In this document: positions 1 through 37,581 of the stretch, one piece after another
Position numbering within the stretch: position 1 is the first letter of the stretch
Layout of the letters: every line of letters starts with the position of its first letter
Assembly: GCA_023213395.1 (NCBI GenBank)
Contig: CM041465.1
Location: 166,663,741-166,727,740 of the forward strand
Length of the DNA stretch: 64,000 nucleotides
Source: Cycas panzhihuaensis
Lineage: Eukaryota; Plantae; Cycadophyta
Direction of reading: 5' to 3'
The notes under the pieces: model-generated
What the model was told of the DNA's origin: nothing
Database searches by the model: none
What the model saw: only the letters and a program-made list of their open reading frames with translations
Made by a program: the position numbers and the translations under genes

Positions 1-700
1 GGATATAGCTTGGCTGTTGCCATACTTCAAAGCCTAAGAAATAATGGAGAAGTCCAAGATCTGTCATCTCAAAACTCCTCTTCAAATCATCCTAGAGAAT
101 CTGTATCATCTTAGTGTCGTTGCCAGTGATCACTAAGTCATCTACATACAAGACAATGAAAATGGCATTATCTTTCCCAACTTTGATATATAAGTTAGGA
201 TCTGAAGTAGATCAATGAAACCCATGTCTGAGAAAGTAATCATCAATCTTTGAGTACCATGCTCTTGGAGCTTGTTTCAAGCCATATAATGCTTTTTTTA
301 GGCGACAAACTAAATGCTCCTTGCCTTGTACCTTGTAACCGGGAGGTTGTTCCAAGTATACCTCCTCTTGAAGATCGCCATTGAGAAAGGCGCTCTTCAC
401 GTCCATCTGAAAAAGTGACCACTTGCATTGAGCTGCTAAGGCCAAGATGAGTCTGATGGTGTTCATGTTAGCCACTGGTACAAAAGTCTCCTTGTAGTCT
501 ATGCCTTCCTTTTGTTTGAACCCTTTTGCCACAAGGCAGGCCTTCTAGTGCTTAAGTGTACCATCATAATGGAATTTGGTCTTGTAGACCCATTTGTAGC
601 TGATTGCCTGTTTGTGTTTAGGCAATTCGACCAAATCCCAAGTTCCATTTGTGTTTCTTCATCCATGGTAGCCTTCTAATTTTCATTTTTAGAAGCCTCC
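1..700 (-). pseudogene. copia #1 reverse transcriptase (partial)
   Basis: ORF 212-532 contains [18 protein letters not shown] and [16 protein letters not shown]; a YVDD codon run occurs near 140-150 on minus. Confidence 0.9.
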
Positions 701-813
701 TCAAAGGTGGAATGCTCATCAACACATAGCACTTCAACCATTAGTGCAAAATTGTTTTGTTGTCTGTATTTTGATGGATGTTTTCCTTCAATAATGTGGT
801 CGTCCTGCATTGT

Positions 814-1933
814 TTAAGTATACCATTTTGGTAACTTTTTAATTGATGTGACTTGAACCTCAAGATCTTTTGGTCTAAGTGGTTGATCAACAGAAGATGT
901 GCTAGGATCAAGTGGAGGTAAATCTGATGATGTGGACGGTCTAGTAGGTGTAGATGATGTACATGGAGTTGAAGATTGAGAGGGAAGGAAGGCATCAACA
1001 ATCTTTTTTCCTTTGTCAATGGGGGGTTGCATGGATGCTGTATGCAACTCCTTATGGTCTTCTTCAACAAAGATTACATCTCTTGAGAGATGCATTTTCT
1101 TTCCAATGGGATCATACAACTTGTAGGCTTTGCTATGAATGGCATAACCTACAAAGATGCAATTTAGACTATGCTTGTCTAATTTTGATTTTTGTTGATC
1201 GGGGATGTGCATATAAGCAGTGCACCTAAAAGTCCTCAAATGGATGACAGTTGGTTTTTTGCCAGACCATGCCTCATCTGGTGTGATGTCGGTGACTGTT
1301 GTTGTTGGACTTCGATTTGCCACATCGGCAGCTGTGTGGAATGCCTCTGCCCAGTAAGCTCGAGTGAGTCCTTTTGCATGCATCATTGCTTTGACTTTTA
1401 GCCAAAGTTCTATTCATTCTTTCGGAGACTCCATTTTGTTGAGGAGTGTGAGGAATAGTAAGTTGTTTCCGAATGCCATTATCCTTGCAGAATTGGGTGA
1501 ATTTGTTTGAAGTAAATTCAGCTCCATTGTCTATCCGTAGTGTTGTGATGGATTGGCCAGCCTCATTCTCCACTTCAAGCTTGAATTCTTTAAACTTTGA
1601 AAATGCTTCTAACTTATGCTAGATGAAGTAAATCCAGACTTTATGAGAGAAGTCGTCAATGAAGGAGATGTAGTACAAAGCTCCTCCAAAGGATGCGGTG
1701 GACATAGGTCCACACAAATCTGAGTGTACCAGCTGCAAAGGATGTGATGCACGCCAAGCTTTGCCTTTAGGGAAAGGCAAGCGATGTTGTGTCCCCATTA
1801 TGCACGCTTCACAAAGACATTTTGTGCCATATATCTTTGGAAGCCCATGTACTATATTTTTGTTCACCATCTGCTTAAGATTGTCTAAGCTCAAATGGCC
1901 TAGACGTTGATGCCAAAGTTGCATCTTGGACAA
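814..1933 (-). pseudogene. copia #1 integrase (GAG-pre-integrase + rve core), frameshifted
   Basis: ORFs 1619-1933, 1274-1573 and 814-1386 carry WHQRLGH, CEAC, HSDLCGPM, DNGAEF, QNGVSERMNRTL and WAEAF. Confidence 0.9.
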
Positions 1934-2573
1934 AGTTTAGGTGACAATGGAACCAGAGTAAGCAGAATCAAGTATTATGTTATTAGCATCCAATTTGTAG
2001 AGGCCATGATTTTCATATCCAACAGCTACTACTTGGTCATCTTTGTCAGTTATTACACATTTCCCATTTTTGAACAAAATGCTCATCTGTTGCTTGTCCA
2101 ATTTGCTAACAGATAGCAAACTCTTCTCCATGGAAGGTATAAAATAGGCATTGCCATTGGGAAATGAGGAGGAAGTGTTAAAGGTTCGCGATATCCTCTC
2201 CACTAATAGGGCGTCCTTTTGGTGTGACGCAAACTGTTCCTGTGGTGCACCCCGATCGTTGGGTCGAGTCCCCTCGAGGTCCTCCTAGAACCCGGGCCCG
2301 GTGCTCAATTCCCATGTGGTCAAGGAGTCGAGTTCTGTGGCGTTGTGGATCGTCACCGCGACGGGGCGTGTTAAAGGTTCGCGATATCCTCTCCACTAAT
2401 GGGGCGTCCTTTTGGTGTGACGGTAAACCGACTCTCCTGCCGTTCTGTATTCCACCCTTCGCGCCCCCGTGCCTGCCTGAAGTCCCTCCGTGGTCATGGC
2501 TGGGCCGGGCTATGTTGGAGCGTCGTGGTGTTCTGGCTGCCGGTACGGTGGAGCGGTTCACGTCACGGGGCGT

Positions 2574-2641
2574 TGTTAACAGCGTTCCCCTCTCCGTTGG
2601 AGGCTCGCCCGGGCCCCTTTTGACGTGATGCTAAGTTCACA
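2574..2641 (+). repeat. micro-LTR b (68 bp, TG...CA), followed directly by Met-type PBS
   Basis: TGTTAAC...TTCACA then TGGTATCGAGC (2642-2652; tRNA-iMet PBS TGGTATCAGAGC minus one A); preceded by CACGGGGCGT. Confidence 0.8.
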
Positions 2642-2871
2642 TGGTATCGAGCGGCCGGGTGCGACTCTGCTCGCTTACGTATTCCACCGGTGCGCCGTGC
2701 CAGGTGAATTCCTCGTGGTCATGCACGGCCGGGTTATACTGGAGTGCCGTGGTGTTCTGGCTGCCGTGCATGGTGGAGCGTTCTCCGCGACGGGGCGTGT
2801 TGAAGGTCTCGCCGAGCCCGCTCCCCCGAGGTTCACCCGGGTCCCTTTTGGGGTGATGGTAAAGCGTTTGT

Positions 2872-3171
2872 CTACGGTTTACCATACACCCAAAAGCCCC
2901 AGGGTGAGATAGGGAGAGGGCTCCGCGAACTTTAACGAGCCGTCACACGAGACCGCTCACGATACTCTCGGCAGTAACACCACGACGCTCCAACATAGCC
3001 CGGCCCAGCCATGACCACAGCGGGAATTCAGGCAGGCACGGGGGCGCGAAGGGTGGAATACCGACCGAGCACGAGAGTCGACCCGTGGCCGCGGCTCTGA
3101 TACCACTACGGTTTACCATACACCCAAAAGCCCCAGGGTGAGATGGGGAGAGGGCTCCGCGAACTTTAACA
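2872..3171 (-). mobile_element. complete 300-bp micro-element (LTR-PBS-internal-LTR), inverted
   Basis: LTRs 3106-3171 and 2872-2936 differ at 1 of 65 aligned positions; perfect PBS TGGTATCAGAGC at 3105-3094 (minus). Confidence 0.85.
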
Positions 3172-3484
3172 GGAAGGATTGGAAGGAGAATGGAATGGAG
3201 CGATTGTGCCTATACCAGAAATCTTGATAGATTCATTGTTGCTGAAGGTCAATGATTGACCTTTTCCTTGATGTCGCAGAGGAGTTCTTCACTCCTAGTC
3301 ATGTGTTGTGTAGCTCCAGAGTCAATGATCCAAGTTTGATCAACCTTGGATGAATGATAAGTACATAACAGTTTGTCCTCATCTGCAAACTGATTGAAGT
3401 GGCATTGATTGCCACCTCTAAACCCACCCCCCTTCCTCTTTGTTGTTGGAACTGCTGCTGTCTCTGACTTTGTTGACGTGGATG

Positions 3485-4309
3485 CTACTGTTGTTGTCGT
3501 GTGTGTTGTAGATCTGCTTGCTTCTTCCTACAATCAGGTGCTATGTGGCCAATTTTGCCACAATAATTACAAACAACATTGGTCTTTGAGGAACCAATGT
3601 TCATGTTCTCAAATTGCTTTGAAAGTGCAAGTTTGGGATTCAGCTTGGTCTTTGATTTGGCCGTGAATGCGCCTGATGTAGATGGTTTGTTCTCATTATC
3701 CTTGGTGTAAATTTGCTCCTCTTGAAGCAACAAGCTTTCAAGTTCATTAATTGACATTCGTTTGAGTGAACCATCTCGTGTGGTGGAAGAAATAAAGCCA
3801 TTGTAGCTCTTAGGCGAAACTTTGGTAATTGGTGTTATAAGCTCATCTCTAGTGGCAGGACTACCTAGTGTATTCAATTCATTACATACCTCCTTGATGG
3901 AGGAAAGGAAAACCAACATAGGCTTAACAAATTTTACAGAATAGAACTTGGCTTTTACCATCAATATGCGAGTTTCATCTCGCCTTTCATACAAAGAGGA
4001 TAAAATGTCCCATGCTTCCTTGGAAGTTTTTGCACACACTATATTTTGATCTATATGAACATCAACAATCATATTTAGGAATGCCAAAGCGATTTCATCT
4101 TTGGCTTTCCAAGTAGCAACAAGAGCATCATCAGGAGGAACAGTTACATCATCATTGATAACAGGTATAGGTTGGGGTATCCTTCCAGAAACATAACTCC
4201 AAAATTCATTCATTATCAAAAGATTTTGAGTGATCCTTTTCCATTCTTGATAGTTGTCTTGTCCTGTTAATCTGATGGTACATGCATTGAGCATATTAAT
4301 TGCAGCCAT
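3485..4309 (-). CDS. copia #1 gag (UBN2-type capsid + zinc knuckle)
   Basis: 274-aa ORF: LTGQDNYQEWK, AKTSKEAWDILSSLY, CNYCGKIGHIAPDC. Confidence 0.85.
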   Translation of the reverse strand: MAAINMLNACTIRLTGQDNYQEWKRITQNLLIMNEFWSYVSGRIPQPIPVINDDVTVPPDDALVATWKAKDEIALAFLNMIVDVHIDQNIVCAKTSKEAWDILSSLYERRDETRILMVKAKFYSVKFVKPMLVFLSSIKEVCNELNTLGSPATRDELITPITKVSPKSYNGFISSTTRDGSLKRMSINELESLLLQEEQIYTKDNENKPSTSGAFTAKSKTKLNPKLALSKQFENMNIGSSKTNVVCNYCGKIGHIAPDCRKKQADLQHTRQQQ

Positions 4310-6666
4310 GTTAAAGTTGTAAGGCTTGAAGTTAGCAGATAACTTGGAGACTCAAAGCTTTCGTCGCTTAAGTTCCACCTTCTAACGAAACCAACAGTTT
4401 TGATCTTACTAGAAGATCCAACAACTGAATGGAATGATGAGGGGTGGAGGACTAGGCTAAAGAGTTGGTCCAACCCTGATCTTTAGAGGAGATCTAATAG
4501 TTGGCCAAGTTAAATCTAGGACAAGGCAGGTAGGGTTGATCTGCATGGACGTATCATACTTTCCTTGGGATTCACAACCCCAATAACACCCTTTTCGAAC
4601 CTCGTTTCCTTCAAGCAACCTTAATTGTCGTGGCGGCACCGATCGGTTGGTCCCCTAGGGAATGCACCAAGCTTAAGGTTATTTCAGAGGCAAGGTTTGA
4701 ATCTTTTTCGGGTCTATCCAACAAGATTTTAAAGTCACTTTTTAAAGGATTAAAGTGGACTTAGGATTTATTTTACTTGGATGGTGTACTTATGAAAAAG
4801 TGTTTGATTAAGCTTATAATGAAAGAGGCTTCAAATGAAGCAATCTAGTACATCAAATGAACACTTAAAAGTGTTGTTACAATGAGCACTTAATGAAGTG
4901 AGAGTGCTATACAAATCCAAGTAAAAAAAAAAGAGATGCTTGAATACAATGAGTTTTGAAAGAAGAAGTACTTGAAAAAAATGCTAAGTACTCAATGAAG
5001 CAAAGCAAAACCTTGTGATGAAAGTACAAGTGGGTTCCTTTTAATGCTCAAGAGTGAAGAGAAGAGGACCACTTGCCAAATAAGAACACCAAGCACCAAG
5101 TGTTGGGACTTTAAAATAGTCTCAACGATTAACAAATGAAGCGATTTTATTAAGTAAGAAGTATTCTTGAGTCTTTGTTGTGACTAAGGGCAATAGGTCA
5201 CTATGCAAGGTGCCTTAAAAAGAGTGTTGAAATAGTGATAAATATCACTTTGACAAAGTATCATCACTTTAAAATCACTTTTAACAAGACTTTTTAACAT
5301 TTATAAACATGAAATAAGTGTAAAATAAAGCTTGAAATACATAAAAACAAAGGCTGAAATTCAATTTTTTTGCAATTTTGAGTAACAAGGACACCTCGCA
5401 GGGAGCCTTAATAAGCACCTTAATCAAGAATTTTTAATCTTCAAAGAAGAGAGAATGACTTTGTATCAACTTTTAATGAAGTTATTAAGAATCAATGAAG
5501 ATTTTAAACTCCAAAAGTACAAAAAAAAAAGTGATTTTTCTTTAAGAAAATGTAAGCTAAGGTCACCATGCAAGGTGCCTTGACTAAAAAATAGCTTTAA
5601 TGAAAGGGAAAAAATCACCTTTTGATGTGAAAAATCACTGAAAAGGCTTTAGTTTTGTCTTTCATTCACTAAAGTGAAGTCAAAGTGAATAAAAAACTAA
5701 AAATCATTAAGAAAACCTTTGAATTTGGCTTAAAAAGCGAATTTTTAATGATTAAAAAAAACTTGGTATAAACGTTGGACCAAGGAAAATTAGATAAAGA
5801 GGAATATTCTCAGAATATTTCAACATTGATAACCTAAGTTTGAAAAACAAAGGTTAAAAAGAGAAATTTTTTGAAATGAAAATCGATGGAGGAGTCGCCG
5901 CCGTCCGCGCGTCTGCGGAAATGAACAGATCGATCGATCTGTTTCTCTCTTGATCGGATTGTAGCCAAACTTCAGACGGAGAGGTGCAGTACTCGTACGG
6001 AGCAACCAATCAAATTTCACGAGTTGAGACTACTTGATAAGGGAGAACGGAGCAGTTGAGCCAAAACGGAGGGCGCACAAGCCAGTGAGAGAAAAGGACA
6101 GCTGTACGGCTATTTAGGGTTTGAAACCCTTCAACAATGCACCAAAAAATTTCTTTGAGGTTTGATACACCTGCATGTGAGTCAGTACGTGGACAACTAG
6201 TCTGATTTAAGAGAAAGAGCAAGAAAACTTCAATTTTTAAAGTAGAAATCACTGAAAACAGTGATAAATCAACCCATCTTTGTTAGAAAAAATGTAGGAT
6301 ATCAACTACAGATTAGAGATGTTAACCAAAGGATTGAAAAGACAACTGAATAACACAGATTTGCCCTTTTCCTTTTTTTTTGAAAAAATAATTTTTTCTT
6401 GAAGAAAAATTAAAGAAAAAACACTTTTTTTCTTTTTGAAAAAAATAGAGTTTTGCACCCTTGATAGAGGTTTGAAAAAATTTTAGAGCTGAAAGTAGCC
6501 TTGCTCCAGCTTTTAACACTGCTCCAGAAGCTTGAACCTGAAGAAAATAGGTCTCAACAAACCTTGGATCGCCTTCGGAGAGAGAAGGTCGTCACCAAGG
6601 GTTTGTAAACCTGCTTTGAATCTCCTTGAGCAGAAAAATCAGAACAGAGGGAACTATTCTCCTCTA

Positions 6667-6678
6667 GCTCTGATACCA
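6667..6678 (-). promoter_or_regulatory. primer binding site (tRNA-iMet) of copia #1
   Basis: GCTCTGATACCA = revcomp of TGGTATCAGAGC, 2 nt from the LTR end. Confidence 0.9.
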
Positions 6679-6680
6679 AA

Positions 6681-7227
6681 TGTGAAAATGGCCTAATGGC
6701 CTTACAATCCCAAGATCTAGAAGCTAGGTTCACTCTAGTTCTAGAAAGCAAATAAGTTAGACAAGAATGAAACTATAAGATCAAATATGAGCAAGATCAA
6801 GCATAAAGAGAAAGAGCAAGAAAATGATACCAAAGATGAGGAGTTGGAATTGGTCCAACCTCCAAATGAATAACAGTTTGATTAGCAAACTGGCAGCATA
6901 ACAATCTGACTCCAACTCTATGAGAACATTGAGTAGAGGTCTCATTATATAGAGTGAAAGGAGAGACCTAAGGCATTCGATGTTTGACAAGTGTCAAACA
7001 TGCAAGGTACATGCCTTGCATGTAGGACGTGTGCTTTTAGGGCTCTCAAGTGAGCAAAAGTGCATGGGGGTCCATTCGACCCTTTAGTGACAATGTTGTG
7101 TCACTAGGAAAGAATGTGGGTGTGCACTTTATCACTTAAGTGATAAGTCACCCCTAAAGTACAAAAGTACACATATTACATGAAAAATAAAGTACATTGG
7201 CTTAACATGTAAACATAAGGTTTAACA
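6681..7227 (-). repeat. 5' LTR of copia #1
   Basis: TG at 6681 next to the PBS; TTTAACA at ~7227. Right end is inferred because the partner LTR is outside the window. Confidence 0.65.
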
Positions 7228-7562: not shown

Positions 7563-10500
7563 TGTTAGAATATAATGTTTTATCCTAGGTTATAAACTAA
7601 TATATTTATGTACCCTAATGTAACCATGTGACACATGTCATCCATAGGTAATTCGGTTACAAGTTAGTTCCGGGGTGGTTACAAACTCTAATTGTATATA
7701 TGTACTTGCATCCTCAATAATGAATCACTTCATTCTCTCTTCATCATTGTGTAAGTTCAACATGGTATCAGAGCATGATACCTTGACCTATTGAAGAGGA
7801 AGATTGTCTTGAAGCTAGTCTAGATTGAGATGTCAGAGGATTTGAAAGAGAAGAAGAAGGCTGAAGAAGAGAAGTGCCAAGTCACTCAAAATTTTGAAAG
7901 AGGATCGGTTGAATCCGTACAGAGCCAGAGTACAGATCCGTACATCCGTACAAATATTATTTTCCAAGTTCTTAGCTCGAGACGAAATTTGGCCAGAATA
8001 TAAAGTGGGCCATTCTGACGAAGTTTCTCTTTTGCATTGAGTTAATTTGAGGTCATTTTCAACCTCTTTTTGGCCAAAAACGAGTTTGCACGGATTTGGA
8101 GTTGGACAGTGAAAATGTGATTTTTTTTGCGTAGTTCTCGTTGGTAATCAAGTTTAAAATCAGTGTTATGACATTTCAATCATATCTACAGTGATTTTTG
8201 AATTTTCTTGTGGAATTTTTTATCAATATAAGCGATTTTCTCTCAAAACCCTAATCGTAGATCGAGCATTTTGAGGTTGTTTTCTCTTTATTCTGAAGTC
8301 AGACTTGAAAAATAATTATAGATCCTAACTCACCTCTGCAAGAGCTTCCTTTTGAGGTATATTTTGTACTTGTCCATACAACTTTTGTACCGTATGAAAA
8401 TCCGTACAATTGTACGGCCTAGGGTTTCAAAAATTGTGTTTTTTGCTTGGAAATGTCTTCTTCCATCTTGGCCCTGTCTGATAATGACAAACTCACTGAA
8501 AACAACTATCACATATGGAAAATTAAAGTAGAAATTCTCCATGGAGCAAAAAATACATGGCAAATTGCTACAGGAGATGAAGTCAAGCCTAAAGATGCAG
8601 GGATTGCCCAAACTAATTGGGAAGAAAGGGACAACACTGGAGTCATCATATTAAAACTGTGAATATCTGATCCTTTACTCATTTATGTTGAGAATCTTCA
8701 CTCCACTACAAGTATTTGGAAGTATCTGGAGAATTTATATGGACAAAAGAATAGAGCTAAGATAATAGCTCTTAAAGAAGAATTGTTCAAACTCCACATG
8801 GTGTCTGAAACAATCACAAAATTTTTACATAAGGTGATTTTACTAAGAAATGATCTCTCCAATGTAGGTGATCCAATTTCAGATCATGCATTAGTAGAAC
8901 TCGTGGTTAGCAAATTGCCCAAGTCCTTTGATGTTACAATAAACACCATTACTAATGCAAATCAAATAGCAACTATGACAATGGACACGTTGATAGGGTT
9001 ACTACTATAACAAGAGCAAAGAATTTCAGATCATGCATTAGTAGAACTCGTGGTTAGCAAATTGCCCAAGTCCTTTGATGTTACAATAAACACCATTACT
9101 AATGCAAATCAAATAGCAACTATGACAATGGACACGTTGATAGGGTTACTACTATAACAAGAGCAAAGAAACAAACGATATGAAGATGTAGGAGAACTTG
9201 AAGACGCATTCACATCTAGATTGAAATTGGGATCTAGAGGACGAAACAGAGGAAGAGGAAAAACTCCTGAAAGTCGCACTCCATCACGTGGACGTTGGCA
9301 AGATTCAAGAGGACGAGGCCGCAACATGCCTTCAAGTTTCTATTATAGTTGTGGTAAGATTAGTCATTTTGCTAGTTCCTGTAAAACCTTTGATATATGT
9401 TATCATTGTGGCAAATCAGGACATTATCCATACCAGTGCAAGAGAGCAGATATCTAGAGAGGGAAGAGACCAATGGGGAACTACAATAAAGAATAGGACG
9501 GTGATGATGATCATGATGAAGAGGAAGAAATGACGTTCGTTGTTGCACTAATAATAAGCCTCCAAGACAAGGATATTTGATACATCAACTGAGGAGCATC
9601 GCGTCACATGACTAGTCGAGAAGAATGGTTCGAGAATCTACAACCATACATTGTTTATAAATTAGTAGAACTGGGAGACAAATACTCCCTTGAAATAAAA
9701 GGAGTTGGAACCATTGCTGTCAAGATAAAAGTCAGAGTTGAGAAAATTGAGAATGTACTTTTGGTGCCAGGTCTAAAAATGAATCTTTTATCTGTCTCCC
9801 AGTTTAAAAAGAAGGGGTTGAGCACTGTATTTGATGAAAAGGGTTTTTGTTATATTCTTGATATGAAGAACAATGGAAATGTAATCGCAAAACGGGTTGA
9901 AAGCAATGACCTATACAGGCTGCTGTCAACCCCATTTTGCCGGGTGTAAAAGTTTGTACTGCTGTAAGTCATAATGATAAAATGTGGCATTTGAAGTACA
10001 ATCATCTTCCCATAGAAAAACTAAAAAATATGGAGAAGAAAAGTTTAGTGATTGGTTTACCTCATATCACATCAAGCAATTTTCTATCTAAAAGTTGCCA
10101 ATTTGGCAAATAGCACAGACTGCCATTTCAAGAAAGCAAATGGCAAGTCCAAGAAAGATTAGAACTAGTACACACTGATCTATGTGGCTCTTTCGCTCTG
10201 CACTCCACCAATGGAAGTAGATACTTCCTTACCTTCATAGATGATTTGACCAGAAAAATTTGGGTTTATTTTTTGCATGCTAAATTAGAAGTTTTTGATG
10301 TATTCAAAGAATTTAAGGCTGAAACTGAATTAGAAACTAATGCCAAAATCAAATGTATAAAGTCTGATGGTGGGGGTGAATATATCTCCAAAGAATTTTT
10401 GGCGTATTGCAAAACCGGAGGAATATGAAGACAATTTACAACCCCTTGTACACCCCAATCCAATGGGGTTGCAGAAAGAAAGAATAGAGTTATCTTGGAA

Positions 10501-12878
10501 ATGGCTCGGAGCATGATGCATGGGAAAAATGTTCCAAGGTCATATTGGGTTGAAGCAATCAGCACAGCCTGTTACTTATTAAACGGAAGTCCAACAAAGG
10601 TAGCGGAACACCATACTCCAGAAGAATCATGGACGGGAAACTAAGCTTGACATAAGTCATGTAAAAGTATTTGGCAGCCAAGCCTTTGTTCATATTCTAG
10701 ATAAGAAAAGAACAAAGCTGGATTCGAAAAGTTTGGAATGTATTAAGGTTGGATATAACAAAAATTTGAAGGCATACAAGTGCATAGATCCAAAAACCAA
10801 CAAGTTATATGTAAGTCAAGATGATGTTTTCAATGAGGAAGACAAAGAGGAAAGTACAAGCCAAATTCAGGTGATTGAAAAGAGACCTCAAACAACTCCA
10901 CCGTACACTTCTATGGAAGAGGAGTCAGACATAACCTTAGAAGAAATTTTAGAAGAGTCTGCTTGACCTCAAGAATCTTACTTAGATTCCACTCTGGAAA
11001 TTGAATAAGGCTCCTCAGAAAAATCAAAGACTGAAGAAGAAAAGGAAAAGAAAATTCCCAAATGGTACCTCAAAACTATAGATGTAAGTAAAGGTTAAAT
11101 ACTTCCTCATAGAACAAGGAGTCAAAAGCCAAGAGCTTTGTTCAGTAATGTAGAGCCACAATCTTTCACTAAAGCCAAAGATCACATAGAATGGAAGAAA
11201 GCTATGGATGCAGTGCTGGATTCAATAAACAAAAACCAGACTTGGAAACTCATTGAGTTGCCATCAAACAAATCGGTTGTAAACTATAAATGGGACTATA
11301 AAATCAAAAGAGGACCTAATGGAAAGGTAGAAAAGTACAAGGCCAGACTAGTTGCAAAGGGATATACACAAACAACAGGTATAGAATATGAGGAAACTTT
11401 TTCTCTAGTGGCTAAGTTAAACATGGTTAGAATAGTTATAGCCTTAGTAGCACAGAAGAATTGGAAAATATATTAGTTAGATGTGAAAAGTGCTTTTTTG
11501 AATGGTGAGATTGAAGAAGAGGTATACATGTTTCAACCAGAGGGTTACATTAGACAAGGACAGGAGCATTTAGTGTGTAATCTAAAAAAGGCACTATATG
11601 GACTGAAATAGGCTCCCATGCATGGTATGCTAAATTAAATAGCCATCTTTGCAAAAATGGCTTCCAAAGAAGCATCTCAGACTCAAGTCTGTACATAAAA
11701 AGTAAAAATGGAGCAATTACTATAATAGAAGTTTATGCAGATGACATGATCTTCACAGGTGATGATGATGAATCAATATCCGATATAAAGAAGCAACTCG
11801 AAATCAAATTTGAAATGACTGACTTAGGACTCCTCAATTACTGCTTTAGGAATCCAAATCGAGCAGCAGACCGATTCAATTACTTTGTGATACATCAGAG
11901 ATTTGTTAACAAAGTTTATAATGGAAGAATGCAATTCTTGTTTCACTCCCATGGAAACAAACTGCAATTTGGCTTTAGGTGAAGGAGAAATTTACATTGA
12001 TGCAACTTTATATAGACAACTTGTTAGAAGTCTAATCTATCTCACGGCAACAAGACCTGACATCTTGTATGTCATGAGTTTAATATCCAGATACATGCAC
12101 GAGCCAAGAACAAGACATTGGAATGCTGCAAAAAGAATTTTAAGGTATCTCAAAGGAACAACCGAATTGAAGCTAATGTATCCAAAAGAGACATCGCATC
12201 AACTAACAGGATTCTGTGATTCAGACTGAGCAGGTGACAAGGAGTAAAGAAAATCAACCAGTGGGTATTGTTTCTTTCTAGGTGCCTCACCAATCTCTTG
12301 GAGTAGTAAAAAAATAGGCCACTGTAGCACTATCATCAATGCAGGCAGTACAAATCGGTGGTCGGTCACGATGGCAGCAGTTTGGCTCAGACAACTAATG
12401 AAAGATCTAAAAGCTCCTCAAAAGACAGCAACAACACTCTATTGCGACAATCAGAGTACAATCAAGCTCATCAAAAATCTAGTGTTTCATGCCAGAACCA
12501 AACACATTGAAGTTCAACATCATTTTATTAGGGAAAAGGTTCAAAACAGAGAAATAGATCTTGTCTACTGTCCCCCAAATGAACAAGTGGCTGATATATT
12601 GACCAAACCACTGGGAAAAGATAGATTTCAAATTCTTAGAGACAAAATAGGATTAGTTGGATAAAACATTAAGAGAGGGTGTTAGAATATAATGTTTTAT
12701 CCTAGGTTATAAACTAATATATTTATGTATCCTAATGTAACCTTGTGACACGTCATCCAGAGATAATTCAGGTACAAGTTAGTTTCAGGGTGGTTACAAA
12801 CCCTAATTGTATATATGTACTTGCATCCTCAATAATGAATTAATTCATTCTCTCTTCTATCATTGCGTAAGTTCAACA
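7563..12878 (+). mobile_element. full-length degenerate Ty1/copia #2
   Basis: LTRs 7563-7762 and 12680-12878 (about 12 substitutions and 2 small indels by eye); perfect TSD CTTCT; PBS TGGTATCAGAGC 7763-7774; PPT AAGAGAGGG 12671-12679; gag-PR-IN-RT-RH fragments. Confidence 0.97.
8453..12664 (+). pseudogene. copia #2 gag-pol polyprotein
   Basis: KLTENNYHIWK, CYHCGKSGHYPYQC, SDGGGEY, KYKARLVAKGY, TRPDI, YCDNQS, HARTKHIEV, ADILTKPL; many stops and frameshifts. Confidence 0.92.
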
Positions 12879-15486
12879 CTTCTTAGATGACTTATGAGAA
12901 TCTTCCCAATTGTGTACTTCTTAGTCAGCATTTGAGGGATAACTAACCAAATAATTAAAGTCACCATGGATTAATGATGGATTAAACATTATTTTCCAAC
13001 AACCTTGTATAATGAAGTTCTTGTTAAGTCTACCAAAGTTTACTCGTATTTACATTTACATGCCTCTTGGGTCCATTTGTGGATGAGTTTTATGGGATTG
13101 CACTTTGTCAATTCAAACTTTTAATAGTTAAGAACATTAAATATCTAAGAGGCAATGCATAACAATTGCACATATTGAGGGTGAGAGAGATACTCCATAA
13201 ATACTTTGTGTTAAATTATATAAAGTAATTACTAATATAATCAAAATATCCATTCACAACATATTTTTTTTGATGTACAGAATGAATTTTTAAATAATGA
13301 TGGAAAACAAGCTTTTATTAAGTGAAATGATCCATTCGAACAGATCATCTTTGGCTTTTGTAATATCACCAACACAATCATGGGTATTTTTATAATCAAA
13401 TATAACTTTTCCAATTTCAAAGTAAGATCAATTTCCCTAGTGTTGATGTTGTGGAGTATTCCTTTGACTAGAAAGGGTATTTTTGGCAAGACAATGGAAA
13501 TGGCTTTGTTTTGTTATATGGTGAACGAGACACTTGCCCTAATACAACCAATGTATTCTTGCTTTCACTTCCTTGGTTTAAAATGACCGCTTTTATCACA
13601 AGTAGCAACGTTTAGTGAGCCTCTCATAACGATCTGACAAATTTGGGCACTTTTCTTCATGATATTATGTCGAGAGTAGCTAGAATTTTGTTGCCTTAAT
13701 TGTACAATGCCTTTGCAATTGCTTGAAGTTTTTGCAACTTGTCAAAACATGACCAACACATTTTTATAGTAGGAAAATTAGGCACATCATTGTTAGCCTT
13801 ATGCCTCATTAAATACTTGTATAACTTCATAATGACTAGATAAGTGAGACTCATTATGGTTACAAGCATCTGAGCATGTATGAGACCACATCTAGGCATG
13901 ATGAGTTGTAATATACCTCACATGTTCTAAAATTAGTGTGTACTTGCCCAATGGATCAGTTTGGTCAATTTGGTGATGAGTTGTATAGGACTACGCTCAT
14001 TGATTCAACTCTCTAAGATCTAAGAACATTAAATATCCAATAAGCAATTCATAGCAATTCTACATATTGAGGATGAGGTAGATTCTCTATAAACGCTCAT
14101 GATAATTCATTTATCCACTCATCAATAGGAGTAAGAAGCTATTGAGAGAGTTAAGGCATCTAAAAAGTTTCTTTCAACAAGTAAGGGTCCATATTCTACT
14201 TCTAGTGGTGATGCATCTAATGCATTTGTGCCTATGATTGTTCAGGAAGATCGTAAATGGCAAAATTTGGGCTTACTTGGAAAGACACTTGATGTGAATG
14301 GAAGGGAGGAGGTGGATAGCAAGGTTCCACGTTGCTTTATGCATACAAACTCCTATTTTCTCTTGTTTGCTCTCCATATTGGTAGGATATGATGAGCTCA
14401 ATTACTGATTGGCCAAGGGGCTATAAGAGCCCTAGATATGAGAGATTGCATACTACCTTGCTTGCAAAGGAAGGGAAACTGGTGGAGTAGTTCATGGAGT
14501 CAATCTGCACAAGTTGAAACACAATAGGGGCTTCCACTATATTAGATTGATGGACAAACGTAACAAATAAACTTCCTATGAATCTCATTGCCAACTCTCC
14601 AAAGGGTGCATGCTTATTTAAGGCAATTGATTGCAGTGGAAAGGAGAAGAACACAATGTTTTACAAATGTTCTCATAAATGTATATGAAAAATGTTGCGA
14701 AATTTGGGTCCATTTGGAAAGATGCTTGATGCGAATGGAATAGAGGAGGTTGATAACAAGGTTGCATGTTGTATTTATGTGTGCAAACTCCCATTTTCTC
14801 TCATTCACTCTCCTTATTGGCAAGATATGATAAAAGCAATTAATGATGGGCGAAGGGGCTATAAGAGCCCTACTTATGAGAGATTGCATACCACCTTGCT
14901 TGGGAAGGAAGGGAAATTGGTGGAGTGGTGCATGGAGTCAATCCTTGCAAGTTGGAACACAATAGGGGTTTCTATTGTATTAGATGGGTGGACAGATGCA
15001 ACAATAGGCCTCTTATGAACCTCATCATCTACTGTTTAAGAGTGCATGCTTCTTTAATACAATTGATTGTACTAATAAGGAGAAGAACATAATTTGTTAC
15101 AAATGTGCTGAGAAATGCAATTGAAATCATGGGGCCATCAAATGTGATGCAAGTCATCATAGACGATTCATACATTTCTAAAGCAATTGGTTTGATTACG
15201 GAAATTAGATACAACCATATATTTTGGACTCCATATGTGGTTTACAACTTGAATTTGGCATTGAAGGTGATTAGGCCAATTCCTTAGATCTAGGAAATCT
15301 ATGATGCAAGGGAGAAAATTTAAGTGTTTGTGGTCAATAGTGAGCAAGCATATCTGATTTTCGAAGCACAGTCTTGCTTGGCAATCTTGAAGGGTGCAAA
15401 ACCATGATTTGCATTCCATTTTTTCATGCTCCGGAGATTATGTGTGGTTAAGGAGGCCTTGGGAAACATTGTGTTTTCAAAGGAAC

Positions 15487-22193: not shown

Positions 22194-24617
22194 GTTTCAG
22201 TTTACCATAAAACTTTGTTGATATGCTTGCATGCATATATTTTTTTCCTTTATTTTCTCAAAGATTTATAAACAAGTCTATGGATTTAGTTCTTTTTATT
22301 TTTTTCTTTTATTTAGGGTTTCAACCGAGATAGAGGTTGCGACATGTCCTTTTGAGATTTCCTTCATGCATAATTAATTCTTTTTGATTGGCAACTAAAT
22401 CTCTCATCATTTAATGAGTGTTCAGTTTTCCCTAGGCTGAAAAACAATTTTTTGCTTTGGGGTTAATATTGGTACTGTGTGTATAGTTAATACAAGAAAC
22501 TATGTTTAGTGAATGTCCTCCTCCTACAGAGGATTGCATTCAATAAGAAACCATATTTAGTGAAAGTGTTGAATTGTTAACTCCTATAGAGGACTATTCA
22601 AGTTTTGGACAAAAATCTTAAACGAGGGTTGTGAATCGCACTATTTCTTTTAGAATCTTATCACACGGCAGGAAATGTGCGTTGACACATGTTATTACTG
22701 AGCACTCAATGTGAAGGGCATTGGATGATATTTGGCGATTGAAGAATGCGGATTGAGTGTTATTGTAGCAGTCCTCCTTACATTGTGATAGAAGGAACTT
22801 AATTGAAATATCCAACCTATCAACATACTTAGCCCTTAAATTATTGAAGCAGTCATTAACAAAGGTTAAATTAAAAGCTTTCAAAAATTTGTGGCAAAAA
22901 TTGCACCAAAAGAACCCTTGTCCTAAGTGATCCATTACTGCTTTCTCCTTATTCTAGTTAACTGGACCACGATAACCCCCTTGTAAATTCCCAACTTAAG
23001 CAGAAATTGTGTAGCAAACTGCACATGATAATTGCTTTGCAAATGGACCCAACTTAAATAGGTAGGGCAATCATTAACAGAGGCTATGTGAAAAGAGTGA
23101 CTTTCAAAATTTTGTAGGAAAAACTGTGGTAAATGAACCTTAATACAATACCACTTTATCCTTATTGTGGTAAATTGGACCATGATAATACCCTTGTAAA
23201 TGGACCCAACTTGTATTGTTTCTCTAGGGAAGACTTTGTGGACAGATTCAATGCTTCAGGAAATAAAATTGCCCTTGCAGTGTACCATAGGCATTGCACA
23301 CATAACGATAATGGCCTCTTCGGAGAACTTATTTAAGTAGTCACTTGTGCAATTATCATTCCTCGCAATCATCTATCATATTTGTCAGGAAATTGTGCTA
23401 AATGAACATTGATTCAATACTACCGTCTTCTTATTGTAGTAAATTGGGTCATGATAAGCCCATTGTAAATGAACCTAATTTGCTTGCTCCTTTAAGGAGT
23501 TTATTAACAGATACAATGGCTTGGGAAGTAAAATTTCCCTTGCAATGTACCATAGGCATTCTGTACATGACTACCATGGCTTCTTCTAAGAACTTATTTA
23601 AGCAGTGATTTGTGCAATTCTCAAATTTCTTTCTTGCATATCCCCCCATGGGAATCCTCTATAAAATGATAATCATTGCCATCACTTGTGCAACTACAAA
23701 TGCCCCCTTTAATACCTTCTTAGGATCTGGTATTTTCTTGCCAGTGTTAACAACCCCTTTAACTTCTTTTTGGAGGAACTCTTATGAGGAGAAAGAATGC
23801 CATTTAGAATATCCAGAAAGAATGCCATTTAGAATATCCATTTACATGGGACAAGTGTTGGTGAACTCCTTTTGATTTTTTCCTTTCCCCTGAAGTTGCC
23901 GGAAGGGTGGGGTTTGATCTTTGACATTTTTCTTAGGGATTGGTTTATTAAGAGATATTCAGGCATAGCACATATCCAAGTGAGATCATTATTTATCATA
24001 TATAAATTCAATAGAAACAAATTATATGTCCATCTCCATGACCAAAGAAGCTCAACGAGACAGATGAAAAGCTGCACATGGCAGTATCTCCAAAAGCTTA
24101 CGTGGGATGAGTGTTGGCCAATCCCTTTGATTTCCCCTCTGAAGCTGCTCTATGGGGGAATTTGATCTTCAATATTGTTCTTTTAGGATTGGTCTATTGA
24201 GAGGAATTCAATCGTAGCACACAGCCAAGCTAGATCATTATTTATCATATATAAATTCACAAGAAACAAATAATCTTTTGTCCACATAATGACCAAAAGG
24301 GTTCAACAAGACTGGTAAAAAAACAGCACATGGCAGGTATATCCAAAACGAGTGTGTAAAGCATCTCCAATAAAAGCTTAACTAGGTGCAAGATAAAATA
24401 AAAATTAGCTTATGATATCATAGTGAAAAGGCTAGACAATGTAGATTGTATATCCAGATTAATAAGAATAGTCAAAAGCGTGTTCACATCTTAATATTTT
24501 ATGGTAAGTATTCACTAGCAGTTTTATTCAATTATAGGCCTTAATTATGGAATAGGCAGGAATGGGAAAAAGGAGTTACATGTCAGTTATTGAGTTTAAA
24601 TATCTTTTTGATTGCAG

Positions 24618-32742: not shown

Positions 32743-35700
32743 TGTTAAAGTATTGATGTTTTATTCCTATGCTTTATTTTTTAAGGGATCCTAAGTAAAG
32801 TGAGGGTTATGTGTCGTAACCCCTCTTTATATTTGTTTGACACATGGCCTACATGCATTGGTCCATACTTGTGACTATTGTATATCTTGAGAGATTCTCT
32901 TCCCTATAATCAAGGAAGGATAGTTCTCTCTCCACATGTTCTCTTGTCTCAACATGGTATTGGAGCAGGTCATTTTGTGAAGGGAATCAAAGTAGGGTTA
33001 AAAGTTTTTTGAAGACAAATGTTAGAAGAAATAAAAGGGAATAAAGATCAAGTTTTTTTTTGAATAGTGGACAAGTTAAAATCACAATATGGGATTGTAC
33101 GAAACTGTATAGATGGATTTTTCAAAGTTCTCTATTTGTAATGAAATTTTACAAATAGGGGCGTCTCAGTACGAGGAATTGTTCATTCCAAAGGATGATC
33201 CTCAAAATCCTCTTCAATCAAAGGGAAATTAGGCTTTTATAGTGGCGAGGGTTTGAGATTTCTCTTAGATTTCATCATCTCAATAAGTGAGACTTGTCTT
33301 AAAATCTTTGTTTTGACATAAGCTTTCATTTGAATCCACTTTTGCAATTTTTTATTAAATATTTTCTAAGATCCAAGCAGAAATCACTTTTAAAGCCTAA
33401 GCGATTGTACAATTTTCAAGCCCTTTTTATGCTATTCTAGAAATCAGATAAACATAAAAACTATAGGTCTAGAAAGAGCACTTTAAAAGAAGTGTTGGGA
33501 GAGTTTCATAAAATCCCGTATACCTGTGTTTTTTTCCCTCGTACATTTGTATGGTGAGGCATTGTTTCATCTGTTTTAGTGTTTTATCTTTGTTCTACTA
33601 TGTTGAAATAAACAATTATGGCCTCAATCTACACATTCAATGATTTTGATAAGTTGACAGGGCAAAATTATAATGCTTGCAAGCTTAGAATGAGAGGTCT
33701 CCTTGCCAAAAATGTTTGGGGGATTGTAAGTGGAAAAGAGGCAAAACTTGGAGCCATTGATGCCACTTAATTAGCAAACTGGGAAGAAAGGGATAGGAAT
33801 GCCCATGCATCCATTATGTTATCAGTAGGAGAATTTGTCCTAACACACCTTAGTGAAATAGATTCCTTTGCTGAAGCCTGGAGAAAAAATTAAAAAAATG
33901 AAGCCCAAATCATTTCCCTCAGAGAACAATTGTGTCGAATTCATCTGAGAGGAGGAAAATGGGTTCAAAGTTTTATCACTAAAATAGTTGAAGTCAAAGA
34001 TAGTCTTGCATCTGCTAGTGAAACATTATCTGACACAGAAATTGTTTGGTTAATCCTCAACAAGTTGCTAAAATCCTATGACAATCTTGTCAATACTCTT
34101 ACTGTAGGAGGCTAGGCTACTAATATGTTTGTTGATACCTTGTGTGGACACTTATTACAGCAAGAACAAAGAACAAAAAGATATGAAGAGGAGACAAACA
34201 TTAAAGAAGTGTTTCTTTCAAGGTTACGATTAGATGGTAGAGGACAACCTAGTAGGACCTCAAGAGGAAGAGGAAGAGTTATGAGAGGAAGATTCAACGA
34301 TTTGTGAGAGGGATGATCTACATTAGCAGAAAGATTCAATGAGGCACTGGCTAGGTACACAACAATAGAATCTAGACCTTGTTATCATTACGACATAAGG
34401 ACATCTTCCTAGTAATTGTAGGTAGTATGATCCTTCAACTTGTTACCGTTGTGGAAGAGAAAGACCCTATGCTAATGGTTGTCCACAAAGAAGAGCTGAA
34501 ATCTATAGGGGAAAGAGAGAAGAAGGAAATTTTAGTAGTGAACCATACAAAGAAGAAGAAGAAGAAGAAGAAGAAGAAATTACTTTTCTCACTGTGTTGG
34601 CTTCATCTGCTCGAAATAATGATGATTGGTTTATAGACTCAAGAGCTTCAAATCAAATATGAGGAAGAAGGAATTGGTTCGAGCAGCAAAATTATGGAAC
34701 TTGATGACAATTTCCTTTACCAATTAACGGCGAAGGCACAATTGTTGTAAAAGTTAATGATAAAATTCAAAAAATTGGCAATGTTGTGTTTGTTCAAGTT
34801 TAAAGAAAAACCTGCTCTTGTATCACAACAGTAAAAGGAAACTTTGAACTATTTTTGATGAGAATCAAAATTGTTTCATATGTGATATGAAATAATTTGG
34901 AATTGTAATTGCAAGAGGAGTAGAGATTGACGACCTTTATAAATTGATCCCTACTCCTATCCCATGTTCTCTTGTACAAGCTTTTGATACTGGCAAATCT
35001 CATAATGAAATCTGGCATTCAAGATATGAACACATTGCCAACAGAAGATTAGAAATGTTGAAGAAATTTAATATGGTAGAAGGATTACCTAATATGGTAC
35101 TTGACTTATCTATTTGCAAAAGTTGCATGCTAGGAAAATAGAACATAGTTCAATTTTAAGAATGCACATGGAGAACAAGAGAAAGACTTGAATTAATTCA
35201 CTTAGACTTGTGTGGGCCAATTCACGCCAAACTCCATTAATGGTGCTTGTTATTTTCTTACATTTATTGATGACTTCTCTAGGAAAACATGGGTGTACTC
35301 CTTTTTCAACAAATCAGAAGTATTAGATGTGTTTAAAGAATTTAAAGCATAAGTGTTTGGAAGAATAGCTTATGTTTATATTCTAGATAAAAAGAGAACA
35401 AAACTAGATTTTAAAAGCATCTTGTGCATAATGGTCTGTTATAGCAACAAATCTAAAACTTATCCTTGCATAGATCCAAAAACAAACAAAATCTATATCA
35501 GTAGAGATGTAATCTTTGATGAAGGGTTTAATGAAGGATTAGCTGATGGTGATAAAGCTTAAAAAACAAAGATTATTCAAGAAGAAAATATTGAATAATT
35601 CCAATAGAATATTTTTCAAAGATAGTACTTCTAGTGAACACTAAGAAGAAGAGGAATCCAACAGTCAACTAATAGATACTGAGCAAACTAGGAATAATGA

Positions 35701-37581
35701 GCAAGAAGGATCAAGTCCAAATAGAAACAACTTACCAAAATGATATTTGAAGATTGTTCAAGAATCAAAGGGAAATCTCTTTGAACACATGACAAGATCC
35801 CAAAGACATCAAGAATTGATTTGTTATGTTGAACCACAAAGATATGACGAAGTTTGCAAAGAGTCAAAGTGGCAAAAACCATGGACACTAAAATGGGTGC
35901 CATAAAAGAAGTGAGACTTGGGAATTAGTCTCACCACCCAAAGGTAAGTCCATTGTTGGATGCAAATTTGTGTGTAAAATTAAAGAGAAATCTGATGGTA
36001 GCATTGAAAAATACAAAGTTAGATTAGTTGCAAAAGGATATAGTTAAACTGTTGGTATTCATTATGAAGAAACCTTTTTTCTAGTAGCAAAATTGATAAC
36101 TGTCAGGACAATCATTGCCATGGCAACACATTTTGGATGGGATATTATACAACTAGATGTGAAAAGTGCCTTTCTAAATGGGGATCTGGATGAAGAAGTG
36201 TATATGGAACAACCTCTTCGAGACATAAAAAGAAGTGAAGAACATCTTGGTTGTAGGTTAAAGAAGACAATATATGGACTCGAGTAGGCACCATGAGCAT
36301 GGTATGTAAGATTAGACTCACATTTCAAACAAAGGTTTTGTCAAGTGCAAATCAGATCTAAGCCCTTATATCAAGAAAAGGGGGAATGTCTTGATCAACA
36401 TAATTGTGGTTTATGTAGATGACGTGATAATTGCTGAAAGTGATCAAGACACAATCAGTTGGATAAAAGTTCTAATGAAAAATGTCTTCGAAATGATAGA
36501 CATGGGTGGATTACATTATTATCTTGAAATTGAAGTAGAGCAAAAAACAAACTCTATCTTTATTTCTTAGTTAAAATATGCAAAAAATCTTCTCAAAAAA
36601 TTCTGGATGGAAGATTGTAATACTACTGCCACTCCAATGGAAACAGAATATATGCTACCTGCAAATAAAGATGGACAAGAGGTAAATGAAACCTTGTATA
36701 GGCATCTTGTTGGTAGTCTTATTTATCTAACTACTACTAGACCTGATATCTCTTATTCAGTTGAGGTAATTTCAAAATATATGCATGCACCAAATTGGAA
36801 TGCAACAAAAGGGATACTGAGATATATCAAAGGTACTCCAACCCTAGGATTAAGCTATGCCAGGACAAGTTCTATTAAATTAACTAGATATAATGATTTA
36901 GACTAGGTTGGAGATCGATAAGAGAGAAAATCTACTTTAGGTTACTGTTTTTGTCTTGGATCAACTGTCACATCTTAGAGTAGCAAAGAATAGGCTACTA
37001 TCACCTTGTCATCTATAGAAGCGGAATACAAAGCAATAATAAGTGCTACTGATGAAACAATATGGATAAGACAATTTTTTAAAGATTTGAAACAAAATTA
37101 GTTGTAGGCCACTTCTATTTTTTGCGGTAACCAAAATGCTATCAAATTAACAAAAAATCCTATATTCCATGCAAGAACCAAACACATTGAAGTGCACCAC
37201 CATTTTATTAGAGAAAAAGTTTCAAACAAGGGAAATAAACTTATAGTATTGCACCAATGAGGAGCAACTTGCAGATATATTTATAGAACCCTTGACAAAA
37301 GCTAAGTTTCAATTTTTGAGAGAAAAGTTGGGGGAAAAAAAAACAAAGGATAAAACATTAAGTGGAGGGAGGGGCGGTGTTAAACTATTGATGTTTTATT
37401 TTTTTAAAGGGCCCTAAGTAAGATGAGAGTTATGTGTCGTAACTCCCCTTTGTATCTGTTTGACACATGGCCTACATGCATTGGCCCATACTTGTGACTC
37501 TATTGTATATACTGAGGGATTTTCTCCTCCCTATAATTAAGGAAGGACAACTTTCTCTCCACATGTTCTCTTGTCTTAACA
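32743..37581 (+). mobile_element. degenerate Ty1/copia #3
   Basis: LTRs 32743-32954 and 37378-37581; TSD GTGTT/ATGTT; PBS TGGTATTGGAGC 32955; PPT AGTGGAGGGAGGGGCGG; gag, PR, partial IN, RT ([18 protein letters not shown]), RH. Confidence 0.93.
34551..34578. repeat. (GAA)n microsatellite in copia #3 gag-PR linker
   Basis: about 9 GAA units. Confidence 0.9.

Follow-up and report, generated by a model that had tools for sequence, protein, structure and literature searches.

We describe here a short CpG-rich block of DNA lodged in a decayed copia retrotransposon of the cycad Cycas panzhihuaensis. The analysis covered a 64-kb stretch of this genome (hereafter the window), and all conclusions come from a single locus within it. 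The block (positions 2176-3171, 996 bp) is composed of miniature retrotransposons with terminal repeats (TRIMs), i.e. small non-coding elements bounded by long terminal repeats (LTRs). As established by repeat finding and alignment, LTR1, interior 1 (int1), LTR2, int2, LTR3, int3 and LTR4 follow one another on the plus strand, and are succeeded by a complete element in the inverted orientation. We consider a single integration of a DNA copy assembled from several unlike elements to be the probable origin of this structure. The parts of the locus are as follows.

1-6690, minus strand: host, a decayed copia, recognised by its Pfam domains, the frame across the joint and the primer site; its protease region is split by the block
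2171-2175, unstranded: left target-site duplication GGAAG, identical to 3172-3176
2176-2242, plus strand: LTR1 (type a); the 5' part (2176-2229) extends to the conserved CTTTTGGTGTGACG and the 3' tail (2230-2242) is CAAACTGTTCCTG
2243-2368, plus strand: internal domain 1, the most diverged interior, with primer-site-like TGGTGCACC (2243-2251), B-box-like GGGTCGAGTCC (2261-2271) and ACGGGGCG (2361-2368)
2369-2430, plus strand: LTR2, a chimera, type a through 2422 and with a 3' tail (GTAAACCG) the same as that of the inverted unit's LTR
2431-2573, plus strand: internal domain 2, lacking a primer site; polypurine-like ACGGGGCG(T) at 2565-2573
2574-2641, plus strand: LTR3 (type b); no other LTR of the block ends canonically in ...CACA immediately before a primer site
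2642-2797, plus strand: internal domain 3, with primer site TGGTATCGAGC (2642-2652), B-box-like GGGTGCGACTCT (2657-2668) and ACGGGGCG (2790-2797)
2798-2871, plus strand: LTR4 (type c), the final LTR of the direct array, ending ...GGTAAAGCGTTTGT, without CA
2868-2873, unstranded: tail-to-tail joint TTGTCT, where the 3' end of LTR4 meets the 3' end of the inverted element's LTR (arms 2845-2867 and 2874-2896, 6-nt spacer)
2872-3171, minus strand: complete inverted element (type d), 300 bp; 5' LTR 3106-3171, interior 2938-3093, 3' LTR 2872-2937, both LTRs 66 bp
3172-3176, unstranded: right target-site duplication GGAAG, identical to 2171-2175

Our headline count for the block is five unlike units, of which four share LTRs in a row and one is a complete element reversed; counted by parts, the direct array (2176-2871) comprises four LTRs and three interiors.

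The host copia retains several Pfam domains: RVT_2 (212-532), an SH3-like domain (within 814-1386), the pre-integrase and integrase domains (1619-1933, the integrase region as a whole being 814-1933), and gag with a zinc knuckle (3485-4309). Its primer site for the initiator methionine tRNA (iMet) occupies 6667-6678, and its 5' LTR is located past 6678. When the block and one GGAAG are deleted in silico, the minus-strand frame is open across the joint, downstream of the protease motif, i.e. in the protease region between gag and the pre-integrase domain. The block interrupts a dead copia, and thus has no effect on a host gene. With a GC content of 0.605 and an observed/expected CpG ratio of 1.01, it is set off by sharp borders in the composition profile from flanks with GC contents of 0.40 and 0.37 and CpG ratios of 0.26 and 0.44, and a perfect 5-bp target-site duplication (GGAAG) encloses it.

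Four public runs were compared with the locus as contigs only; these are mostly of ~100 nt and come from other organisms, and none of the runs is recorded as RNA, although run X17 may be one. Paralogous copia contigs of these runs skip 1001 bases (2169 to 3171), with six letters common to both sides, which is the empty-site form of the insertion. Given the GGAAG duplication, the restored frame and these empty-site contigs, the assembled sequence does contain a genuine insertion with a 5-bp duplication. The host copia family (2050-2175 and 3172-3300) is hugely abundant in the four runs, from several organisms, with a summed contig depth of 10^4-10^5; the corresponding value for pieces of the miniature elements is 10-10^3. 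Interior 1 (2218-2343, depth 0-11) and 2932-2973 are almost absent from these runs.

The LTRs of the direct array start at 2176, 2369, 2574 and 2798, and the unit periods are 193, 205, 224 and 234 nt. The six LTRs of the block (62-74 bp) share a common core in the alignment, TGTTAAAG..TCGCG..CTCTCC..CTTTTGG.GTGA.GGTAAA. The polypurine-like ACGGGGCG stands directly before LTR2 and LTR4, and is separated from LTR3 by one extra T. Repeat finding paired 2175-2229 with 2368-2422 (98% identity, spacing 193) and 2872-2936 with 3106-3170 (98% identity, spacing 234); weaker LTR and internal matches were found at spacings of 224-228, and an inverted match of 134 nt (81%) connects int2 with the inverted unit. 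An earlier sequence-only reading of this DNA had reported a GC- and CpG-rich island in the copia protease with a perfect GGAAG duplication, and had parsed it with the same coordinates and periods into homologous yet strongly diverged units. All of this was borne out, the units differing by roughly 7-30%. The LTR pairs are not identical (97-98% identity); the two 66-bp LTRs of the inverted unit differ at two positions.

The relationships between the parts of the block are those of a mosaic. LTR1 and LTR2 are alike at 53/54 positions through ...GTGTGACG, and are unlike thereafter, LTR1 continuing with CAAACTGTTCCTG and LTR2 with GTAAACCG. Moreover, the stretch 2429-2532 (the end of LTR2 and int2) is 93% identical to the interior of the inverted unit, and the 3' end of int2 is nearer to unit 3. 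Judged by these similarities, LTR2 is a chimera: its 5' part belongs with the interior on the left side, its 3' tail with the one on the right. LTR3 and LTR4, too, have tails unlike each other, and the different LTR types share identical runs of merely 8-14 nt in the alignment. LTR1 and LTR4 are ~80% identical over aligned columns, with indels and unlike tails. LTR4 and the inverted LTR are ~90% identical, and the interiors ~70-80%. Contigs of related plants carry other combinations of the same modules: a b-type LTR leading into an int2-like interior, the end of a c-type LTR leading into an int2-like interior, and an a/c LTR chimera, with joints from 2869 to 2441 and from 2401 to 2846; one related contig tracks LTR4 up to 2869 and then departs. 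As the units are ordered, and the LTRs and interiors combined, differently in these contigs, the family is a mosaic.

A perfect iMet primer site is present in the inverted unit only (TGGTATCAGAGC, 3094-3105, minus strand). That of unit 3 (TGGTATCGAGC) is the iMet site minus one base, and unit 1 carries at the corresponding position a different sequence starting with TGG (TGGTGCACC), which may resemble the 3' end of plant tRNA-Gly(GCC). No primer site was found in unit 2 in the alignment of the units: compared with the inverted unit ~30 nt are gone, the primer site included, and the dinucleotide CG is shared at the edges of the deletion. The Met primer site abutting the LTR, which had been proposed earlier for the units in general, is therefore perfect in the inverted unit and one base short in unit 3, while unit 1 has another sequence in its place and unit 2 has none.

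B-box-like motifs follow the primer-site position in three of the units (GGGTCGAGTCC, GGGTGCGACTCT and, in the inverted element, GGGTCGACTCT at 3074-3084 on the minus strand), and a related contig of run X17 has a perfect GGTTCGACTCC at the corresponding place. A CTTTTG run (T-run) is present in every LTR. These motifs would be compatible with transcription of the mini-TRIMs by RNA polymerase III (Pol III). Folded together in RNAalifold with a packaging hairpin in mind, the four interiors, a sample of four sequences only, gave a weak consensus (-16.65 kcal/mol, covariation term -0.75).

The block has the features by which TRIMs are recognised: direct terminal repeats around a short interior (less than 1,500 bp in total), a primer site and a polypurine tract, and no retrotransposon protein. 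It is non-coding TRIM material, and its direct part satisfies the definition of a tandem-array TRIM (TA-TRIM), with at least three LTRs, at least two interiors, shared inner LTRs and one duplication, yet GGAAG encloses the array and the inverted element together. A permissive Rfam search of both strands of 2000-3400 gave no match at E<=1 (no hammerhead, 5S or tRNA-like RNA), and the possibilities that the block represents a retrozyme, a Cassandra element, a tRNA-type short interspersed element or a small nuclear RNA were therefore dropped. ARAGORN found no tRNA in the entire window, and Pfam found nothing at E<=0.1 in two GC-driven open reading frames of the block (134 and 127 amino acids). 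Self-BLAST of the block against the window (word size 7) revealed no further copy of the family and no likeness to any copia leader. A metagenome scan with a 15-base degenerate LTR motif, which was too short a pattern, yielded no BLAST similarity to the block among the at least 120 loci listed, and a viral-contig scan with a pattern of U5 plus primer site gave no match.

Neither GGAAG nor CTTCC occurs at the joint 2868-2873, at any inner LTR boundary or elsewhere inside the block. The direct array alone is flanked by GGAAG and CTACG, and the inverted element alone by TTTGT and GGAAG, so that neither has matched flanks. The block begins with TGTTAAAG and finishes with CTTTAACA; both outer ends are LTR 5' ends, and both reactive 3' ends read ...TTTAACA. 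Because there is a single perfect duplication, the frame is restored on removal and no copy of the duplication is present at the inner joints, the composite entered as one piece, with two LTR 5' ends as its termini. In this respect, the earlier description of a non-coding LTR-type concatemer that entered as one block was correct.

The joint at 2871/2872 deserves separate consideration. The LTR of the inverted element stops exactly at the base preceding the primer site in its 5' copy. Since two whole LTRs abut here, and since the inverted LTR ends exactly before the primer-site position, the joint is an end-to-end ligation of DNA in which a complete DNA-copy end was joined with little or no loss. 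The U5 ends that meet there (...GTAG and ...TTGT) are without the terminal CA, and internal LTR3 has ...CACA. In the inverted element the 3' LTR begins with CG, not TG, and both LTRs terminate with ...CCGTAG, not CA. This suggests, from a sample of two, that integration through two U3 ends might be what copies with a faulty U5 end rely on.

Taking these observations together, we regard it as reasonably probable that the block is a single integrase-mediated insertion of a composite DNA copy derived from several unlike TRIMs, which were mobilised in trans, likely by a copia-type element. In the first step, several unlike mini-TRIM RNAs of ~200-230 nt would have been enclosed in one virus-like particle. 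The minus strand would be primed on one RNA, hop at its 5' end to the 3' end of another RNA, and repeat this, giving LTR-int-LTR-int-LTR-int-LTR, in which each inner LTR would unite the 5' part (U3) contributed by the upstream RNA and the 3' tail (U5) contributed by the downstream RNA. Unit 2, having no primer site of its own, could have travelled as a passenger. The final plus-strand transfer, which normally makes the outer LTRs identical, would not have been completed as usual; the array is readable as a multi-hop minus strand whose plus strand was primed at the polypurine tract copied last, with no standard second transfer. In the second step, a blunt or almost blunt ligation would have joined the free U5 end of the array to that of an ordinary 300-bp TRIM DNA, an intermolecular counterpart of the formation of 2-LTR circles through end-joining. 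Alternatively, integrase might synapse two U3 ends of different molecules, the free ends being sealed later. In the third step, to which the structure itself testifies, the two outward U3 ends (...CTTTAACA-3') entered the old copia in its protease region at positions 5 bp apart, and GGAAG was duplicated.

Both template hopping and end-joining are permitted by published models (Sabot and Schulman 2007, PMC1950507; Kalendar 2020, PMC7215508). For the direct array, the sequence favours joining at the stage of reverse transcription, because single LTRs are shared, LTR2 is chimeric, unit 2 is primerless, there is scant continuous identity between the LTRs, and the family is mosaic. Being without a primer site, unit 2 could not have been copied alone. 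Joining in reverse transcription had already been put forward in the sequence-only reading; it fits the four-LTR direct array, but not the tail-to-tail joint, where two whole LTRs abut, and the array departs from the prediction of identical outer LTRs.

The window contains two further copia elements that are relevant to the question of a helper. Copia #2 (7563-12878, plus strand) has ~200-bp LTRs that are 92.5% identical, the ends TGTTAG...TTCAACA, the duplication CTTCT, and, immediately behind the LTR at 7763, a perfect primer site for iMet. Copia #3 (32743-37581) starts with TGTTAAAG and has a polypurine junction ...GGGGCGG/TGTT; the mini elements share this end and a GGGGCG(G)/TGTT junction. 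The 5-bp duplication of copia #3 has one mismatch, and its primer site (TGGTATTGGAGC) is diverged. From the shared ends, the junction, the primer site and the 5-bp duplication we infer that a copia-type helper acting in trans is plausible and the most likely source of mobilisation, which leaves the helper proposed earlier as a plausible partner deduced from these short motifs.

Whether the insertion is recent, as the sequence-only reading suggested from intact CpGs and the perfect duplication, is uncertain. Within its two LTR pairs there are three differences in ~120 positions, all of them transitions, one of which makes an inner LTR start with CG. This would point to an insertion of some age or, as hopping allows, to LTR copies derived from different RNAs, and the CpG content of the block cannot decide between the two.

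Several points weigh against a single integration of a composite formed in this way. The template-switch model (PMC1950507) predicts identical outer LTRs, and since LTR1 and LTR4 are of unlike types (a and c), one must suppose that what appears to be a multi-hop product was completed in a non-standard way. The model does not explain the origin of a clean integrase substrate at the left end of the array. The switch point in LTR2 may be either 2422/2423 or 2430/2431, so that the RNA ends are not fixed. The copia with matching ends in the window (copia #3) is old, with LTRs that are 82% identical, and the helper is deduced. The differences within the LTR pairs could mean an age sufficient for later local rearrangement or gene conversion. 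With the exception of 2727-2826, no contig of the four runs spans any unit boundary of the block, so the assembly is without independent confirmation, and the case depends on one locus.

More tentatively, the block may be the product of a routine process. The ~200-nt mini-TRIM RNAs, with almost no terminal redundancy and maybe transcribed by Pol III, would be packaged many per copia particle; reverse transcriptase would routinely run from RNA to RNA, so that heteropolymeric DNA could form in every cycle, reshuffling U3, interior and U5 and rescuing primerless RNAs, and copies with a CA-less U5 would integrate only after U5-to-U5 ligation, via their two U3 ends. We consider this possible but doubtful.

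The alternative that survives best, although we think it unlikely, is that complete mini-TRIM DNA copies were joined before integration, by single-strand annealing or microhomology in the LTR core for the direct part and by blunt end-joining for the inverted part, with subsequent integration through U3 ends. Such joining needs no identical outer LTRs, in agreement with the difference between LTR1 and LTR4, and at the tail-to-tail junction DNA was certainly joined end to end. The short conserved motifs CTTTTGG and GGTAAA are possible annealing sites, and CG microhomology flanks the primer-site deletion of unit 2. The partners would, however, have had identical LTR pairs, yet the tails of LTR1 and LTR2, and those of LTR3 and LTR4, differ, so that at least two more hidden partners or truncations are needed. 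Furthermore, the primerless unit 2 would have been unable to make a DNA copy of its own, unless its deletion arose in the joining.

We find it improbable that the tandem arose by unequal or ectopic chromosomal recombination, or by gene conversion, between LTRs, whether in place, following a simple insertion, or in a master locus. This is the usual account of multi-LTR TRIMs and LTR retrotransposons (Gao 2016, PMC4717578; Yin 2014, PMC4079214; McGurk and Barbash 2018, PMC5932611), it is also expected to yield a chimeric inner LTR (PMC1950507), and the LTR pairs are non-identical, so that some time has elapsed. Recombination between independent insertions, however, leaves no single shared duplication (PMC1950507), whereas this locus has a perfect duplication and an undisturbed host frame. 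Unequal exchange between sisters or alleles yields near-identical units, and does not give an inverted terminal element with breakpoints exactly at the element ends; the units found here differ by roughly 7-30%, and the 62-74-bp LTR types have only the 8-14-nt identical runs in common. Nor can normal retrotransposition re-copy a master locus with an inverted end. An inversion in place was rejected as well on the basis of the flank and joint sequences; it would require two breakpoints lying precisely where elements end.

A chimeric or mis-joined repeat in the assembly appears quite improbable. At best, 24% of the sampled words occur in any one public run, and none of the contigs bridges the block. 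Against an artefact speak the exact duplication and the restoration of the host frame, the location of all boundaries at functional landmarks (LTR starts after a polypurine tract, LTR ends before a primer site), and a match of 2727-2826 at 100/100 positions in one independent contig of run X17, the sole exact match in the block. The inverted part is no copy of the adjacent direct part (LTRs ~90%, interiors ~70-80% identical), and a palindromic read was rejected because these two parts are unlike in sequence.

Two or more independent insertions at the same or an adjacent target, double or nested, are a documented origin of tandem and inverted transposon dimers (PMC5932611), but this explanation is very improbable here and was rejected on the basis of the flank and joint sequences: the copy of the target expected in the joint (McGurk and Barbash 2018) is missing at 2868-2873 and at every LTR boundary as either GGAAG or CTTCC, and neither the array nor the inverted element has matching flanks when taken alone. 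Finally, a fold-back or terminal-inverted-repeat DNA transposon merely resembling LTR elements would account for block ends that are inverted copies of a ~66-bp sequence starting with TGTTAAAG, but is hardly credible in view of the periodic layout of LTRs, primer sites and polypurine tracts inside, the perfect iMet site, and ends that are the same as copia LTR ends in the window.

A single insertion of a composite DNA copy may be compared with several known systems, and the novelty attributed to the block by the sequence-only reading proved to be overstated: multi-LTR TRIMs and an inverted SMART pair under one duplication have already been published (PMC4717578; PMC4079214). Among the closest are the TA-TRIMs and Zma-SMART (PMC4717578; preprint 10.1101/010850), tiny non-coding elements of ~280-290 bp with 3-5 LTRs, the inner ones shared, and one 5-bp duplication; TA-TRIMs were found in 35 of the 43 plant genomes surveyed (10.1101/010850). 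For the ~280-bp SMART of maize, a five-LTR tandem array and an inverted pair, each under one duplication, were confirmed by polymerase chain reaction (PCR) (Gao et al. 2016, PMC4717578, Fig. 3), the PCR-validated inverted pair being AC220956:117725-118283. The published TA-TRIM arrays, however, consist of one subfamily and have been ascribed to recombination, whereas the Cycas block contains four or five diverged types, a primerless unit and unlike outer LTRs, and combines a direct array with an inverted element in one insertion.

The size of the elements is likewise not exceptional. SMART (FRetro129; Gao et al. 2012, PMC3281118) is 292 bp long, with 85-bp LTRs and a 122-bp interior; the inverted Cycas element (300 bp, 66-bp LTRs) is comparable, both having a 5-bp duplication and a copia-like helper deduced from short end, primer-site and polypurine motifs, although SMART is a grass family and the comparison is one of structure. 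The smallest published TRIM is CcaRetroS9 (233 bp, 52-bp LTRs; 10.1101/010850), and the Cycas element is not smaller.

Multi-LTR forms are also known for Cassandra (Yin 2014, PMC4079214; Kalendar 2020, PMC7215508), with 3-5 LTRs, a primer site and polypurine tract at each inner LTR, and mostly 5-bp duplications; in pear, three to five LTRs are found in ~18% of the intact copies flanked by target-site duplications (PMC4079214). Recombination has been put forward as an origin of these arrays, and so has template switching (PMC4079214; PMC7215508). In contrast to the Cycas block, with its 62-74-bp LTRs, unlike units and no 5S match, Cassandra has ~270-bp LTRs, a Pol III promoter derived from 5S rRNA and near-identical units.

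Pol III transcription was proposed for the TRIMp3 group (Cassandra, Helenus and Ajax; Kojima 2024, PMC10886601), and in three Cycas units there is a B-box-like motif, with a T-run in the LTRs. Helenus, however, has a whole tRNA-like sequence within its LTR (PMC10886601), whereas neither ARAGORN nor Rfam found a tRNA in the Cycas block, where the motifs would be split across the LTR, the primer site and the interior. Retrozymes (Cervera et al. 2016, PMC4918200) resemble the Cycas units in being small non-autonomous plant elements of LTR type with an iMet primer site, but carry a hammerhead in ~350-bp LTRs, for which the block gave no match at E<=1.

With regard to the mechanism, the complex elements explained by a hop between co-packaged RNAs (Sabot and Schulman 2007, PMC1950507) are similar, as one duplication surrounds LTR-int-LTR-int-LTR with a chimeric inner LTR. 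Of the features expected under that model, the duplication of a single integration and the chimeric inner LTR were found here, but not the highly similar outer LTRs. Moreover, the published examples have two full-size units with highly similar outer LTRs, whereas the Cycas block has three units plus an inverted fourth. Thus, the kind of element, its size class and the inverted arrangement have already been published; we came across no description of clearly different family members in one array, with modules exchanged between LTRs, a primerless passenger, unlike outer LTRs, and an inverted element attached to the direct array in the same insertion.

Elsewhere in the window, self-BLAST revealed three short tandem duplications (14255-15126, 23842-24348 and 53763-54256; periods of ~436, 256 and 259 nt; 75-93% identical). 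There are also three long direct repeat pairs with 79-95% identity (39595-40316 and 46520-47239, 47301-47659 and 59565-59929, 52765-52981 and 57985-58200), from which it seems that the right half of the window holds no fewer than two additional, partly nested LTR elements.

The origin of tandem LTR retrotransposons has been stated to be open, the choice lying between chromosomal recombination and concatenation during retrotransposition (Morales-Diaz et al. 2025, PMC11899658). These two possibilities are indistinguishable in homogeneous arrays, but an array of unlike units can tell them apart. The block is informative because a chimeric LTR, a primerless passenger and two U3 ends are hard to obtain by homologous recombination and easy by hopping and end-joining, and it is therefore a candidate natural record of the formation of tandem TRIMs in reverse transcription. 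If the block is indeed a heteropolymer of this kind, it would be the relic of a population of RNA parasites that recombined with one another, and would testify directly that reverse transcription can give rise to tandem LTR elements. Unless the linkage of modules is confirmed genome-wide, it would be one more complex TRIM insertion; if it is confirmed, the family would constitute a natural system for the co-packaging and recombination of non-autonomous retroelement RNAs.

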